The notes below the pieces were generated by a model. That model did not search any database and was not told the origin of the DNA. It worked only from the letters and a program-made list of their open reading frames with translations. A stretch of DNA of 64,000 nt from Paragordius varius (taxonomy: Eukaryota > Animalia > Nematomorpha), in NCBI GenBank assembly GCA_964247055.1, contig OZ176055.1, positions 5,394,001 to 5,458,000 of the forward strand. Reading direction: 5' to 3'. How positions within the stretch are numbered: position 1 is the first letter of the stretch; every line of letters begins with the position of its first letter. Position numbers and translations under genes: made by a program. This document shows, in pieces, positions 1,495 to 20,040 of the stretch.

Positions 1495-1953
1495 CTATCT
1501 AATATTATATGATTCATTAACATTTATTTGATCCCCATTTTCGCAGCACAGTGTTTGAGGATCCTTTTCATTAAGATTATGGTCCAACTTCAAAGTTATT
1601 TTTAAAGATTTGATTACTCGGTGTATAGTGGATTTAGATAATTTTATTATTTTTTCATCTTCTATCATTTTTTTTAATTGGTTAATCGTTAATGACGGCT
1701 GATAAGTTAGTTTATTATTTATGAAATGCATAATATCTTCCGTAACTTTTTTGTTTCTAGTGCCTCCACGAGTTTGAATTTCATAACTATTGTTTTTTTT
1801 ATATTTATACAAAATTTGACGAGCAGTATTATAGTTTATGTCTAAATCCTTTGATACATCCACAGTCGATTCTCCATCAAAAAAAACTCGTTTTACTAAT
1901 AGCTTCCTATCTTGAGATATAACTAATTTTTTCTTGATTCCTGTTTCTGACAT
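1495..1953 (-). mobile_element. Truncated IS630/Tc1-mariner transposase ORF (DNA-binding HTH domains only, no DDE domain)
   Basis: 152-aa ORF with two HTH-like blocks (STVDVSKDLDINYNTARQIL; LTINQLKKMI...LSKSTIHRVIKSLKIT) joined by an RGGTRNKKVT linker typical of IS630/Tc1 transposases. The ORF stops before any catalytic D/D/E motif. TIRs were not identified. Confidence 0.75.
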
Positions 1954-14246: not shown

Positions 14247-14885
14247 TTTGTATAACCTTCTTTAGGATAAAGAAAAGAAATTAAAACTAAATCAAAAAAG
14301 ATATAAAATGATGAAAATGATTAGGGGGAAAGGTATTTTACCAAGTGAAAAAAATCAGTATACATTACTGGCCTACACAATACATACGCTCTAATAAATA
14401 TAATTCCGGACTTGCTAAACACATTTGTTCTCAAGCCCACCACATAGCTAAAACAGAAGTTTTGGATAACATTGAAGATCGTTCAAAACGATTTATACGT
14501 GAAGCTATCGAAATTAAAAAACAAAATGCAAATCTCAACCGTGCCGACGGTATGATATTGTCTAACATCTGGAATTACAACCTAAAATAGTATTATATAA
14601 TGCAACTATAACACAACCAATTATACTTAATTATTATACAATTGTATAATCCATTCATTAATTAAGGGTATTTATAACTATTTTTTCCAGTAATGTTTAC
14701 TGGTTTTTTCCCTAGTTATAAATATCTTTACCACACATCATTTTATATCTTTTTTGATTTCGTTTTAATTTCTTTTCTTTATCCTAAAGAAGGTTATACA
14801 AAAATAGCCGAAAAGATATTTATTAAATAAATTAACTATTTATTTTTTAAAAATCATTAATACGCGTTTTTGCCATTTACTTTCG
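14247..14885 (+). mobile_element. Penelope-like element remnant: C-terminal GIY-YIG endonuclease fragment flanked by inverted terminal-repeat copies
   Basis: ORF 14345-14590 contains SGLAKHICSQAHHIAKTEVLDNIEDRSKRFIREAIEIKKQNANLNRADGMILSNIW, the typical PLE EN C-terminus (S.LA.H...GH......IL..E.....R...EAI.I......LNRD.G..L...W). Segment 14247-14370 is an inverted copy of ~14688-14803. Confidence 0.75.
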
Positions 14886-15151
14886 AATGAGAATGTTTGT
14901 TTGTATGAGAATGATTTGTAAGAGAATGTATATCCGTGTGAGATTTAGGAATGTGTGTTGTGTTTCTGTTAATCATGTTATGCCTCTTTTCATGTGTCTT
15001 AAAATATATTTTTGTGATGTTTTTGGAAAAAAATAGTTTACTGAATGTCCGCTACTGCGATTTTTCGATATTAAGCAAACACCACAAATATAAAAAAACT
15101 TATATCACTTGTAATAATAACCATGATTCTGATTTTATTAGAATATATATA

Positions 15152-18100
15152 CAGTATGCATTTTAATGTCTGTTAAGTAATTTTATTGCCTGCCAAATAA
15201 CATAAATGGTTTATCAAAAGCGTAAAATACTGACCCACGAAATTATTTCGTAGTACACATATGAAAAAGATTGACGTGAGAATTAACATAGGCTTTAATT
15301 TGATGGATATTTTGTAATGTTAAATTTTGGGAATATTATAGCAATTTATGTTAACATTTGTAATATTGTTGTTACGTATTTAGATGCGGAATTTTGTGGG
15401 TTTTTATCTTTGATAAATTAATAAATAGTAAAATACGTATTTTAAGATATTTTATGTTAATTATTCCTAAATTTAATAATAAATATTTTTCAACATGCTA
15501 AATACCTGTATTAATTAATCTTGGTATCATAATTTTATATAGTTGTTATTACTAATTAAAAAAACACAGGTAAATATATATTTGTGAAAATTTAAGTAGA
15601 TTTTTGTCTTTTATGTTTTGCATTATTTTTATCAGGTAAAAATTGCGGTTTTTAATAAATTTCCTAAAAATTTAGTTTTTTTTGTTTTTTAGGTTTTGCA
15701 TTGTTAATTGTAACTAACTACTGCATATTTTGGACATTATAATAATTACAGGTAAAAATTGCGGTTTTTAACAAATTCAGTAAAAATTTAGTTTTTTTTG
15801 TTTTTTTTAGGTTTTGCATTGTTAATTGTAACTAACTACTGCATATTTTGGACATTATAATAATTACAAAATTTAGTAAAAAGTTAATTTTTTTGTTTTA
15901 GAGGATTTTCATTGTTAATTGTAATTATTTAATTTTGGACATTTCAATTAATAAAGGTAAAAAATGAGGTTGTTTTTATATTTAATAAAATTTAATATTT
16001 TCTTGTTTTTTTATTTAATATTGTTAATTGTAATTAATTACTACATATTTGGAAATTTTAATAAATACAGGTGAAAATGGCGGTTTTTAACAAATTTCAA
16101 ATGTAACATTTTTTGTATCTTGTATCATTGTTATTTAATTAATTACTAAATATTTTGGACATTTAAAAAACTTGTGTAAGTTGCGGTTTTTATTAAATTA
16201 GTGAATTTTATTTTTTGTTCAACCTTGCTAATTTATTTATCACTATATATTTGTGATACATTGATATATACAGGTAAAAATTACTATGACTTGCGGTTTT
16301 TTGAATTATTTAAAATATTTTTTTTACATTGATAACTTATATAATAAATATAGTTAACATATCTGAGTAGGTAAAAATGCATGTTACGGTTTTATGTTTG
16401 ACATTTCCATCAACTATTTATATTTTAACAAACAACTTATGTCACCAAAGATTGAAAATAAGATCAAGATATATAAAACATCTTTTAAAGTATCTGAATA
16501 TCGCCAAATATAAATAAATTTATTTAAATTATAAATGTATAATTATACAAAATATTCATATTATGTTTGAAATTAACATTCTTCTTATTGATATTAATAC
16601 AGGTAATTTATTTATATAAATGATGTACGATGCGGTGTGCGTTCATGATGATCATATGGATTGAAGAATAGTATAAGATGTAGATAATCCTGAAAATTTT
16701 AATCACCATCATTTTTTAGGTAGACAAAATATAAGATAATTGATATATTAGAAAATTGATACCTGGAAATATTGGGGGAAACATTCATAGTTTGAAAGGA
16801 AACTCAAAAGGTTGACTTGGCTTTTTAACAATTAAATTTGCAAAAAAATATTTTCTTCATGATAAAATATTCAAAAATGATTTATGTTTTTTTCGTTCTA
16901 CCATCCTAAACTATAAATATGAAAAGGCTTATATGATTTCACCATACCAATGACGTCAAATAGAAAATAGAAACAAATAATTTTTTTCAAAAGCTTGGAA
17001 TGCAACAGCACTCCAAAAGCAGGCAACACTAACATTGTTTGCTTTGGTGAAGAATAATTTTTTATATTTATAGTTTAGGATGGTAAAACGAAAACGTAAA
17101 ATAAGGTATCATTTTTGAATTTTTTATCATGAAGAAAATATTTTTTTGCAAATTTAGTTGTTAAAAAGCCAAGTCAACCTTTTGAGTTCCCTTTCAAACT
17201 ATGAATGTTTCCCCCAATATTTAATCCAAGTATCAATTTTCTAATATATCAATTATCTTATATTTTAGGTGATAGAATCTACCTAAAAAATGATGGTGAT
17301 TAAAATTTTCAGGATTATCTACATCTTATACTATTCTTCAATCCATATGATCATCATGAACGCACACCGCATCGTACATCATTTATATAAACAAATTACC
17401 TGTATTAATATCAATAAGAAGAATGTTAATTTCAAACATAATATGAATATTTTGTATAATTATACATTTATAATTTAAATAAATTTATTTATATTTGGCG
17501 ATATTCAGATACTTTAAAAGATGTTTTATATATCTTGATCTTATTTTCAATCTTTGGTGACATAAGTTGTTTGTTAAAATATAAATAGTTGATGGAAATG
17601 TCAAACATAAAACCGTAACATGCATTTTTACCTACTCAGATATGTTAACTATATTTATTATATAAGTTATCAATGTAAAAAAAATATTTTAAATAATTCA
17701 AAAAACCGCAAGTCATAGTAATTTTTACCTGTATATATCAATGTATCACAAATATATAGTGATAAATAAATTAGCAAGGTTGAACAAAAAATAAAATTCA
17801 CTAATTTAATAAAAACCGCAACTTACACAAGTTTTTTAAATGTCCAAAATATTTAGTAATTAATTAAATAACAATGATACAAGATACAAAAAATGTTACA
17901 TTTGAAATTTGTTAAAAACCGCCATTTTCACCTGTATTTATTAAAATTTCCAAATATGTAGTAATTAATTACAATTAACAATATTAAAAAAAAAACAAGA
18001 AAATATTAAATTTTATTAAATATAAAAACAACCTCATTTTTTACCTTTATTAATAATGTCCAAAATTAATTAATTACAATTAACAATGAAAATCCTCTAA

Positions 18101-18847
18101 AACAAAAAAATTAACTTTTTACTAAATTTTGTAATTATTATAATGTCCAAAATATGCAGTAGTTAGTTACAATTAACAATGCAAAACCTAAAATAAACAA
18201 AAAAAACTAAATTTTTACTGAATTTGTTAAAAACCACAATTTTTACCTGTAATTATTATAATGTCCAAAATATGCAGTAGTTAGTTACAATTAACAATGC
18301 AAAACCTAAAAAACAAAAAAAACTAAATTTTTAGGAAATTTATTAAAAACCGCAATTTTTACCTGATAAAAATAATGCAAAACATAAAAGACAAAAATCT
18401 ACTTAAATTTTCACAAATATATATTTACCTGTGTTTTTTTAATTAGTAATAACAACTATATAAAATTATGATACCAAGATTAATTAATACAGGTATTTAG
18501 CATGTTGAAAAATATTTATTATTAAATTTAGGAATAATTAACATAAAATATCTTAAAATACGTGTTTTACTATTTATTAATTTATCAAAGATAAAAACCC
18601 ACAAAATTCCGCATCTAAATACGTAACAACAATATTACAAATGTTAACATAAATTGCTATAATATTCCCAAAATTTAACATTACAAAATATCCATCAAAT
18701 TAAAGCCTATGTTAATTCTCACGTCAATCTTCTTTCATATGTGTACTACGAAATAATTTCGTGGGTCAGTATTTTACGCTTTTGATAAACCATTTATGTT
18801 ATTTGGCAGGCAATAAAATTACTTAACAGACATTAAAATGCATACTG
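15152..18847. mobile_element. Giant foldback-type non-autonomous DNA transposon (3.7-kb palindrome) with Tc1/mariner-type ends
   Basis: Arm 15152-~16925 is the reverse complement of ~17058-18847, with a spacer of only ~130 bp. Ends read TA|CAGTATGC...GCATACTG|TA. Each arm contains ~8 tandem ~110-bp subunits (caggtaaaaattgcggtttt...). No transposase ORF. Confidence 0.88.
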
Positions 18848-18940
18848 TATTTCATCAAGATTTTCTTGCGTGTGCTGTGTTATGTTAAAATTATTTGGTG
18901 AAGCTAAATGCTCTTTCTTAAATAATATCATTTATATAAC

Positions 18941-20040
18941 ACTGTGTGCAAAAAAATTTAACAAAATGTTTATCATCAGATAGCTTATAGGGAAATCATT
19001 TGCCGCAAAAATTTTATTTATTGACGACCAAGTTTTTACAATATTGAGAGAAAATCGAAATCAAAAACTGTAAATTAAGGATAATTGAAAAAATATTAAT
19101 AAAATTTGAGATATTAAGGTATCTTGTCATTTTATCAGATATTTACAAAATAGCTTAAAATTATATAATTAGGGTTAAACTCAGATCAAAAAATCCTATT
19201 TTTTCATTAACATACCTATATGCAAAAATTTTATGATGAAACTATATTAAATTAAAACTCACTATTAAAAGCTTAATATTTTTTTATACAGTAAAAATTA
19301 GTTATATATCAAAATAAAATTGATAAAATATTGTTTTTTATTTTTTTCATCTGGTTCATGAGTGTATAATAAATTTAATTAGTTTGGAATGTTACATGAG
19401 CGGGAATCAGAAAGTATATAAATTAATACAAAATACAATTTACATGTAGTGGTATAAAATTCTTATAAATTCTAGGAACAGGTTTGTTTTAACAACAAAT
19501 TAATATTTTTGTTGCGATTTGTACGGATTTTTGGCTGATTTTCCATTACTTGTAAATTCTATTTTTATAAATTTATATACTTTGTGATTCCCATTTAAGG
19601 TTCCAAAATAAAACATTAACTTTAGTATATACTCATATGCCATACGAAAAAAATGAAAAAATAAAAAACAAATTATTAATTTTATTTTTTATATATAACT
19701 TATTTTACTGTATAAATTAATAATTAAGATTTTAATAGTGAGTTTTATAAAGTATGTTAATGAAAAAACAGGATTTAGATCTAAGTTTTGATATAATACC
19801 TGATTATATAATTTTAAGCTATTTATAAATTTATATCTGATAAAATAATATATCAAATTTTATCATTATTTTTTTAATTATTCTTAATTTTCAGTTTTTA
19901 GCTAATTTCGATTATCTCTCAATATTTCAAAAACTAGGTCGTCAGTAAATTATATTTTTTGCGGCAAATTAATTCAATGGTTATATATCTCATGAAAAAA
20001 AATTTTGTTAATAAAATGAACCCTCTTGTTTGCACAATAT
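18941..20040. mobile_element. Degenerate ~1.1-kb palindromic element
   Basis: Matching inverted blocks along both halves, e.g. tttgccgcaaaaa/ttttttgcggcaaa, gacgacc/ggtcgtc, aaaatagcttaaaattatataat/attatataattttaagctatttt, aaaactcactattaaaa/ttttaatagtgagtttt. Centre near 19480. Termini and TSD not resolved. Confidence 0.7.

Follow-up and report, generated by a model that had tools for sequence, protein, structure and literature searches.

A multi-copy foldback family with Tc1/mariner-type ends, probably a non-autonomous transposon, in the genome of Paragordius varius

Introduction

What is the near-perfect palindrome that occupies positions 15152-18847 of a 64,000-nucleotide stretch of the Paragordius varius genome (GenBank assembly GCA_964247055.1, contig OZ176055.1, positions 5,394,001 to 5,458,000; the whole stretch is hereafter the window), and by what means could it have arisen and spread? 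A preliminary description, made from the sequence of the window, had taken it for a foldback element with Tc1-type ends. Searches of the whole assembly lead us to conclude that it very probably belongs to a non-autonomous and recently active transposon family of the IS630/Tc1/mariner superfamily, which is present in many copies and has a foldback as its whole body. This would make it a cut-and-paste element of ~4 kb, almost wholly one hairpin, that has still been able to reach about a hundred copies.

Results and Discussion

A family of foldbacks inserted at TA

The preliminary description had staked its reading on the existence of other copies with the same termini, to be sought genome-wide with the terminal sequence, and such copies are plentiful. 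The terminal 41-mer (TA plus 39 nt) has 93 forward and 93 reverse matches in the genome at up to 3 mismatches, and its reversed control has none; the ~93 end pairs are spread over 11 large contigs and lie in differing flanks. TA stands at the junction in 40 of 40 distinct flanks over all loci, positions -3 to -5 show a preference for A/T, and the TA is all that the two flanks of a copy have in common, as they differ beyond it. With the first 251 nt of the element as a query, 42 scored genome matches were obtained, 40 of which are 99-100% identical. Moreover, 14 further copies all read TA/CAGT...ACTG/TA (slashes mark the junctions) in unrelated flanks, the end pairs among the matches listed span 2.0-6.7 kb, and every one of the 18 full copies examined is a foldback within the same size range. 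In the terminal 460 nt, identity has a median of 99.56% between the arms within a copy and is 98.9% between copies, and such near-identical ends would fit a recent burst. A single terminus variant is repeated in one orientation on two contigs, five times at intervals of 6-20 kb (G000:C4:1674103-1722096) and four times at intervals of ~48 kb (G000:C5:11213333-11362013), which suggests large tandem segmental duplications that carry one copy each.

The copy in the window is a member with symmetric arms. The collinear inverted pairs found there by an inverted-repeat search span 15149-18850 and comprise 15149-15266/18733-18850 (100% identity), 15264-15943/18055-18734 (99%), 15988-16724/17278-18014 (99%) and 16767-16881/17108-17222 (97%). 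In a gapped comparison of the element with itself they merge into a single pair of arms (element positions 1-1774 against 3696-1908; 98.0% identity over 1,793 columns). The left arm of 1,774 nt (15152..16925, plus strand; inverted pairs I1-I4, I7 and I20) and the right arm of 1,789 nt (17059..18847, minus strand) are separated by a central spacer of ~133 nt (16926..17058), which is unique, non-palindromic and partly self-pairing. The junctions read atata/TA/CAGTATGC...GCATACTG/TA/tttc, so that the element ends in CAGT...ACTG between directly readable TA duplications at 15150..15151 and 18848..18849. Arms of ~1.77 kb, a spacer of ~130 bp and these very ends had been read in the preliminary description. 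Each arm consists of three zones, namely an outer unique zone of ~430-480 nt, a subunit array and an inner unique zone of ~520 nt.

It is also evident that the element codes for nothing recognizable. The longest open reading frame (ORF) of the window copy has 62 amino acids, and tblastn with 27 ORFs of at least 200 amino acids from transposase-bearing loci of this genome, a query set that covers at least five transposase families, detected no coding remnants in any copy. Similarly, a search of the window gave no matches to known RNA families. The TA target-site duplication and the CAGT-type terminal inverted repeats are those of the Tc1/mariner superfamily, and transposase-bearing Tc1-type elements of the same genome likewise end in TACAGT. 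The earlier suggestion of a non-autonomous element with Tc1/mariner hallmarks is thus well supported by TA at all 40 flanks, CAGT ends, ~93 end pairs, no ORF longer than 62 amino acids and no transposase remnant. The family is non-coding and has ~100 copies, though at 2.0-6.7 kb it exceeds the size of a miniature inverted-repeat transposable element (MITE; < ~0.8 kb).

A shared 19-nt terminus and the source of the transposase

The outermost 19 nt of the element, TACAGTATGCATTTTAATG (TA included), are found with a different continuation at 91 further termini (control 0), and there are 347 sites genome-wide at which this terminus is followed by a base other than T (control 0). Several plus/minus pairs among these 347 are only 163-216 bp apart and are thus MITE-sized, and the 163-216-bp family with the shared terminus fits the definition of a MITE better than the foldback does. 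Examples of such pairs are C1:7196703-7196887, C1:13786073-13786264, C2:4826561-4826740 and C3:3539729-3539891, in which TACAGTATGCATTTTAATG is mostly followed by GTTACTTAT...; the shared terminus itself contains GTATGC. In the window copy, the outermost terminus CAGTATGCATTTTAATG (15152..15168, plus strand) is the sole part common to other element families and is presumed to be the transposase recognition site. Because the outermost 19 nt are common to hundreds of other termini, one trans-acting transposase is the likely driver, and the simplest reading of the termini would be a single enzyme for which the outermost ~19 nt suffice and which mobilizes several unrelated passengers in trans. The element, with its CAGT...ACTG ends and encoding nothing, is inserted at TA with duplication of the TA; a Tc1-type DD(E/D) transposase supplied in trans would recognize the outermost ~19 nt, excise the element and paste it at a new TA. 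For annotation, the foldback family and its MITE-like sibling should both be masked as Tc1/mariner-type repeats.

Several observations weigh against this reading. Copy identity is the one line of evidence for current mobility. The preliminary description had looked forward to an autonomous partner with a DDE/D ORF between the same arms, but no transposase gene was found between ends of the foldback type among the families and copies read. The superfamily is represented and still alive in the genome, which has 135 DDE_3 matches, several of them with intact frames of 335-342 amino acids; nevertheless, the readable intact DDE_3 families end differently after TACAGT (TACAGTTCAAATTC..., TACAGTAAAATATG..., TACAGTAACATAAAC... 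and CAGTAAATGTTAAT...), and among the matches listed no DDE_3 hit whose frame is intact has a terminus within one element length. One decayed DDE_3 hit is located 3.3 kb inward of a solo terminus that resembles those of the family (L071), with no connection apparent on inspection. The partner transposase may exist unseen, may have been lost, or may have tiny frame-breaking introns.

The candidates for the partner were set aside one after another. Five intact or near-intact DDE_3 families have termini other than those of the foldback; the DDE_3 remnant inside the L071 terminus is decayed and looked unconnected; the pogo-type domain DDE_1 is absent from the genome in a domain search, and the mariner-type genes are decayed relics only. 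As for long copies, L031 (6.5 kb) carries a non-LTR (non-long terminal repeat) reverse transcriptase and not a transposase, and the extra length of the others is due to nested elements.

Tandem subunits in the arms

The preliminary description counted ~8 tandem subunits of ~110 bp per arm. The number and size are roughly right, although the array is confined to ~15584-16400 and its mirror at 17599-18415 and does not fill the arm. The left array (15584..16400, plus strand) holds ~8 degenerate subunits of 103-118 nt with the core CAGGTAAAAATTGCGGTTTTT, as seen from direct-repeat families D1-D13, Tandem Repeats Finder (TRF) periods of 118 and 205, and the motif positions; the right array (17599..18415, minus strand) is its mirror, with direct-repeat families D3, D4, D6 and D8-D10, TRF periods of 118, 93 and 202, and 4 core motifs at mirrored positions. 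For the element as a whole TRF reports period 118 (2 copies, 95%) together with periods 205/202 and 93. The core is present exactly twice per arm and four times per arm at up to 4 mismatches, and a motif search found no occurrence in the other 60 kb of the window. In an arm of the window copy about 7-8 degenerate units follow, spaced 97-205 nt apart.

Among the 18 full copies, the number of good core motifs per arm ranges from 1 to 12, the two arms are unequal in 13, and arm-to-arm alignments are offset by ~+/-117 nt. Gain and loss of units proceed separately in the arrays of the two arms, as in a minisatellite. Long modular inverted arms with variable tandem subunits, the trait that had been likened to Foldback and Galileo, are therefore present in this family and do vary between copies. 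Genome-wide the core motif occurs 801 times (402 forward, 399 reverse; control 0), in the order plus then minus within each listed cluster. Some plus/minus pairs are only 0.8-1.0 kb apart (e.g. C1:4334488/4335462, C1:5151304/5152350 and C2:3275530/3276371) and probably represent short foldback relatives, each arm of which has a single subunit.

The best surviving alternative concerns the role of these arrays, which the preliminary description had cast as rows of transposase-binding sites. If they were functional, they would be needed for, or would boost, the transposition of so long an element; the core is the best conserved part of the subunit, with its 801 instances (control 0) and at least one motif kept in every arm of all 18 full copies, and repeats of 21 bp make up the ends of other Tc1-type families in this genome. 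However, local alignment of the terminal 45 nt with the subunit on both strands revealed no more similarity than chance would give (231 of 500 shuffles did at least as well), whereas in elements of the IR/DR (inverted repeat/direct repeat) kind the inner sites repeat the outer one. A motif number of 1 to 12 that differs between the arms of one copy gives no sign of a required number, and sibling families that share the terminus, and only its outermost 19 nt, diverge from base 20 on. Binding arrays are on these grounds improbable, and it is likelier that the subunits are tandem repeats carried as passengers than that the element requires them as binding sites.

Origin and inheritance of the palindromic body

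The foldback lies in a gene-poor, transposon-rich gap, with genes at about 11-12 kb and 20.5-24 kb on either side. Such an intergenic position might suit a hairpin-RNA locus like Mu killer, in which read-through double-stranded RNA and small RNAs would silence the family or its transposase, and a transcript across the element is predicted to fold into a stem of ~1.7 kb. The arms, however, are without transposase sequence, so that small RNAs could target only non-coding DNA of the family, and about a hundred copies would make any such RNA a by-product rather than the output of a dedicated locus. We regard this function as distinctly improbable, somewhat more so than that of binding arrays.

A further alternative is that each copy turned palindromic after its insertion, through local inverted duplication or extension of the terminal inverted repeats, and it is true that this genome is generally prone to palindromic Tc1-type elements, some of which have a transposase gene in both arms. 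Against it stand the spacer and the innermost stretch of the arms, which is slightly asymmetric. Both recur in every copy read, at 84-99% identity, and a query of inner arm plus spacer found ~39 copies genome-wide at 80-97% identity, nearly all with a plus hit paired to a minus hit; older subfamilies (80-88% identity) do not differ in architecture from the younger copies. All copies agree in spacer, in the asymmetric innermost 80 nt of the arms and in arm order, which independent events would not yield, and separate formation is thus very unlikely. Because spacer and inner arms are common to all copies, the palindromic body goes back to the ancestor of the family and has survived several rounds of spread; since every copy inherited this body with its 133-nt spacer, the family transposes as a palindrome and is not formed anew at each site. 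Likewise an artefact of assembly can be practically dismissed, be it a fold-back chimera made in long-read library preparation (lone large palindromes are a known artefact type in long-read assemblies) or a collapsed inverted duplication, in view of ~93 end pairs on 11 large contigs with differing flanks and TA on both sides, copies that differ in subunit number and carry private nested insertions, and the architecture shared by older subfamilies.

How the inherited foldback was first made is a separate matter. Long-repeat and whole-hairpin MITEs are not explicable by simple deletion, and template switching during gap repair after excision has been proposed for them (PMC3814204). By analogy, the founder of the present family would probably have derived from one end of an ancestral element through template switching during gap repair, a model that would fit both the foldback family and the palindromic twin-transposase elements of the same genome described below.

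Comparison with known foldback and Tc1-type elements

The preliminary description had spoken of a hybrid and possibly undescribed architecture. This was overstated, as whole-element foldback derivatives of Tc1/mariner with TA duplications are known in Caenorhabditis elegans, among them Tc6, PALTA1_CE and CeleTc2 (PMC3814204). Tc6 (Dreyfus and Emmons 1991, as cited in PMC3814204) and the PALTA/CeleTc2-type elements are non-autonomous, TA-flanked and presumably mobilized in trans, with Tc1-like ends, a nearly complete palindrome and a short unique centre, and the Paragordius family likewise is palindromic over its whole length around a short unique centre and has TA and Tc1-like ends. Compared by description rather than by sequence, those elements measure about 1.6 kb or less and the present family 3-5 kb, two to three times as much, and the variable tandem array in each arm is a feature of its own.

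Foldback (FB) of Drosophila and Galileo of the P superfamily also have kb-long inverted arms that consist in part of tandem subunits, the number of which varies between copies and arms, and most of their copies have little or no coding capacity. However, FB makes a target duplication of 9 bp and Galileo one of 7 bp, whereas the present family has neither and shows a TA duplication with CAGT ends, and this places it in another superfamily. Tc3, Minos, Paris, Bari3 and the IR/DR element Sleeping Beauty share the TA duplication, the CAGT-type ends and inverted repeats that reach far beyond the ~30-nt minimal site. They differ in being autonomous or simple-deletion derivatives with repeats of 0.2-0.5 kb whose inner sites repeat the outer; the arms described here are ~1.8 kb long, meet in the middle of the element and hold internal repeats unrelated to the terminus. 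The present family unites Tc1/mariner ends with variable modular arms like those of FB and Galileo at an unusual size, and as a foldback it belongs to a kind already known.

Closer to hand are three palindromic elements of the same genome (L055, L056 and L057), which belong to the same superfamily and are whole-element palindromes with TACAGT-type ends, but which have DDE_3 ORFs of 313-316 amino acids, other termini and no DNA similarity to the present family. L056:589-8982 (G000:C11:1381088-1389481) is an 8.4-kb palindrome with 4,067-nt arms of 100% identity and a 313-amino-acid DDE_3 ORF in each arm. It has outer TACAGTAAAATATG ends plus inner inverted TACAGTTTTTGCAC ends at 2663/6908 that enclose both ORFs, and may consist of an outer foldback with a palindromic twin-gene element nested in its centre. 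The 3.2-kb palindromes L055:3137-6335 and L057:3505-6758 are without a spacer, and their ends are made of 21-bp repeats (CAATTCAAATTCACCCT...); L055 has two head-to-head DDE_3 ORFs of 316 amino acids, and L057 has one full ORF of 316 amino acids open and a shorter partner frame. A DDE_3 search revealed at least 8 head-to-head pairs of the L055/L057 kind in the genome. Together with the foldback family, these twin-transposase palindromes form a natural series on the origin of long inverted repeats and on the tolerance of a genome for large palindromes.

Nested insertions at the palindrome centre

Four private insertions were found among the 18 full copies, and three of the four are within 15 nt of the spacer. 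At the centre of L031 stands a 2.6-kb fragment of a non-LTR retrotransposon with an RVT_1 domain, at the centre of L035 an element of 1.1 kb that ends in CACTAG...CTAGTG and has a 3-bp duplication, and at the centre of L061 a 2.4-kb foldback of another family; the fourth insertion, in L062, is of Tc1 type, has TA on both sides and lies 86 nt into an arm. Five additional half-copies have no insertion, and a further copy on contig C3, judged from its coordinates only, has ~1.1 kb of foreign DNA at the centre. Of the 69 kb surveyed, ~4% belongs to the centre zone, so that three of four insertions there give P ~3e-4, or ~4e-3 if the zone is set at 10%; what detracts from this part of our reading is that these values are for n = 4 events and for a zone defined after the events had been seen. 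The palindrome centre nevertheless appears to behave as a weak point or target, where unrelated elements are found far more often than in the arms.

Two readings of this clustering can be offered. The predicted DNA fold has a stem that runs inward to a loop of ~100 nt at the centre, and the insertions would fit a loop, or loop base, that is exposed when the palindrome folds. With a 133-nt spacer, extrusion of a cruciform from duplex DNA is unlikely and a single-strand hairpin during replication is more plausible. The insertions also fit a second reading, in which a longer spacer stabilizes a large palindrome and such copies persist. If the preference for the centre is true, it would be evidence for hairpin formation in vivo. 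One could go further and suppose that the host lineage has a bias of repair or replication by which Tc1-type transposons become whole-element palindromes still able to transpose, with the foldback family as the non-coding extreme, and that their centres form hairpins in vivo that serve unrelated elements as structure-specific landing sites; we put this forward as a speculation, possible and yet rather unlikely.

Two of the nested elements deserve a further remark. The L031 fragment (L031:2276-4874) lies inside the spacer and has an ORF of 827 amino acids with RVT_1, whose C-terminal part weakly matches an endonuclease-type domain. The 1.1-kb repeated element of L035 (L035:1883-3005) has the ends CACTAGACAAC...GTTGTCTAGTG and an apparent 3-bp duplication (tag), and is also present at L056:843-1834 and L056:7737-8728, one in each arm of the 8.4-kb palindrome, and at L026:1-517.

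Setting and neighbouring elements in the window

The window belongs to contig C6 of a 110.6-Mb, 44-contig assembly with a sampled GC content of ~21-35%, and no sign of an effect of the foldback on any gene was seen in it. A fragment of the N-terminus of a Tc1-type transposase at 1579-1929 (minus strand), which has a weak HTH_32 match below the Pfam cut-off and is 45% identical to an ORF of the L058 type, is unrelated to the foldback. A short way upstream of the palindrome, a 556-bp unit at 14247-14802 has 67-nt inverted repeats (99%) and an ORF of 81 amino acids at 14345-14590, and is probably another small transposon. Directly downstream there is a unit of ~950 bp at 19007-19959 with imperfect inverted ends of ~117 nt (85-87%).

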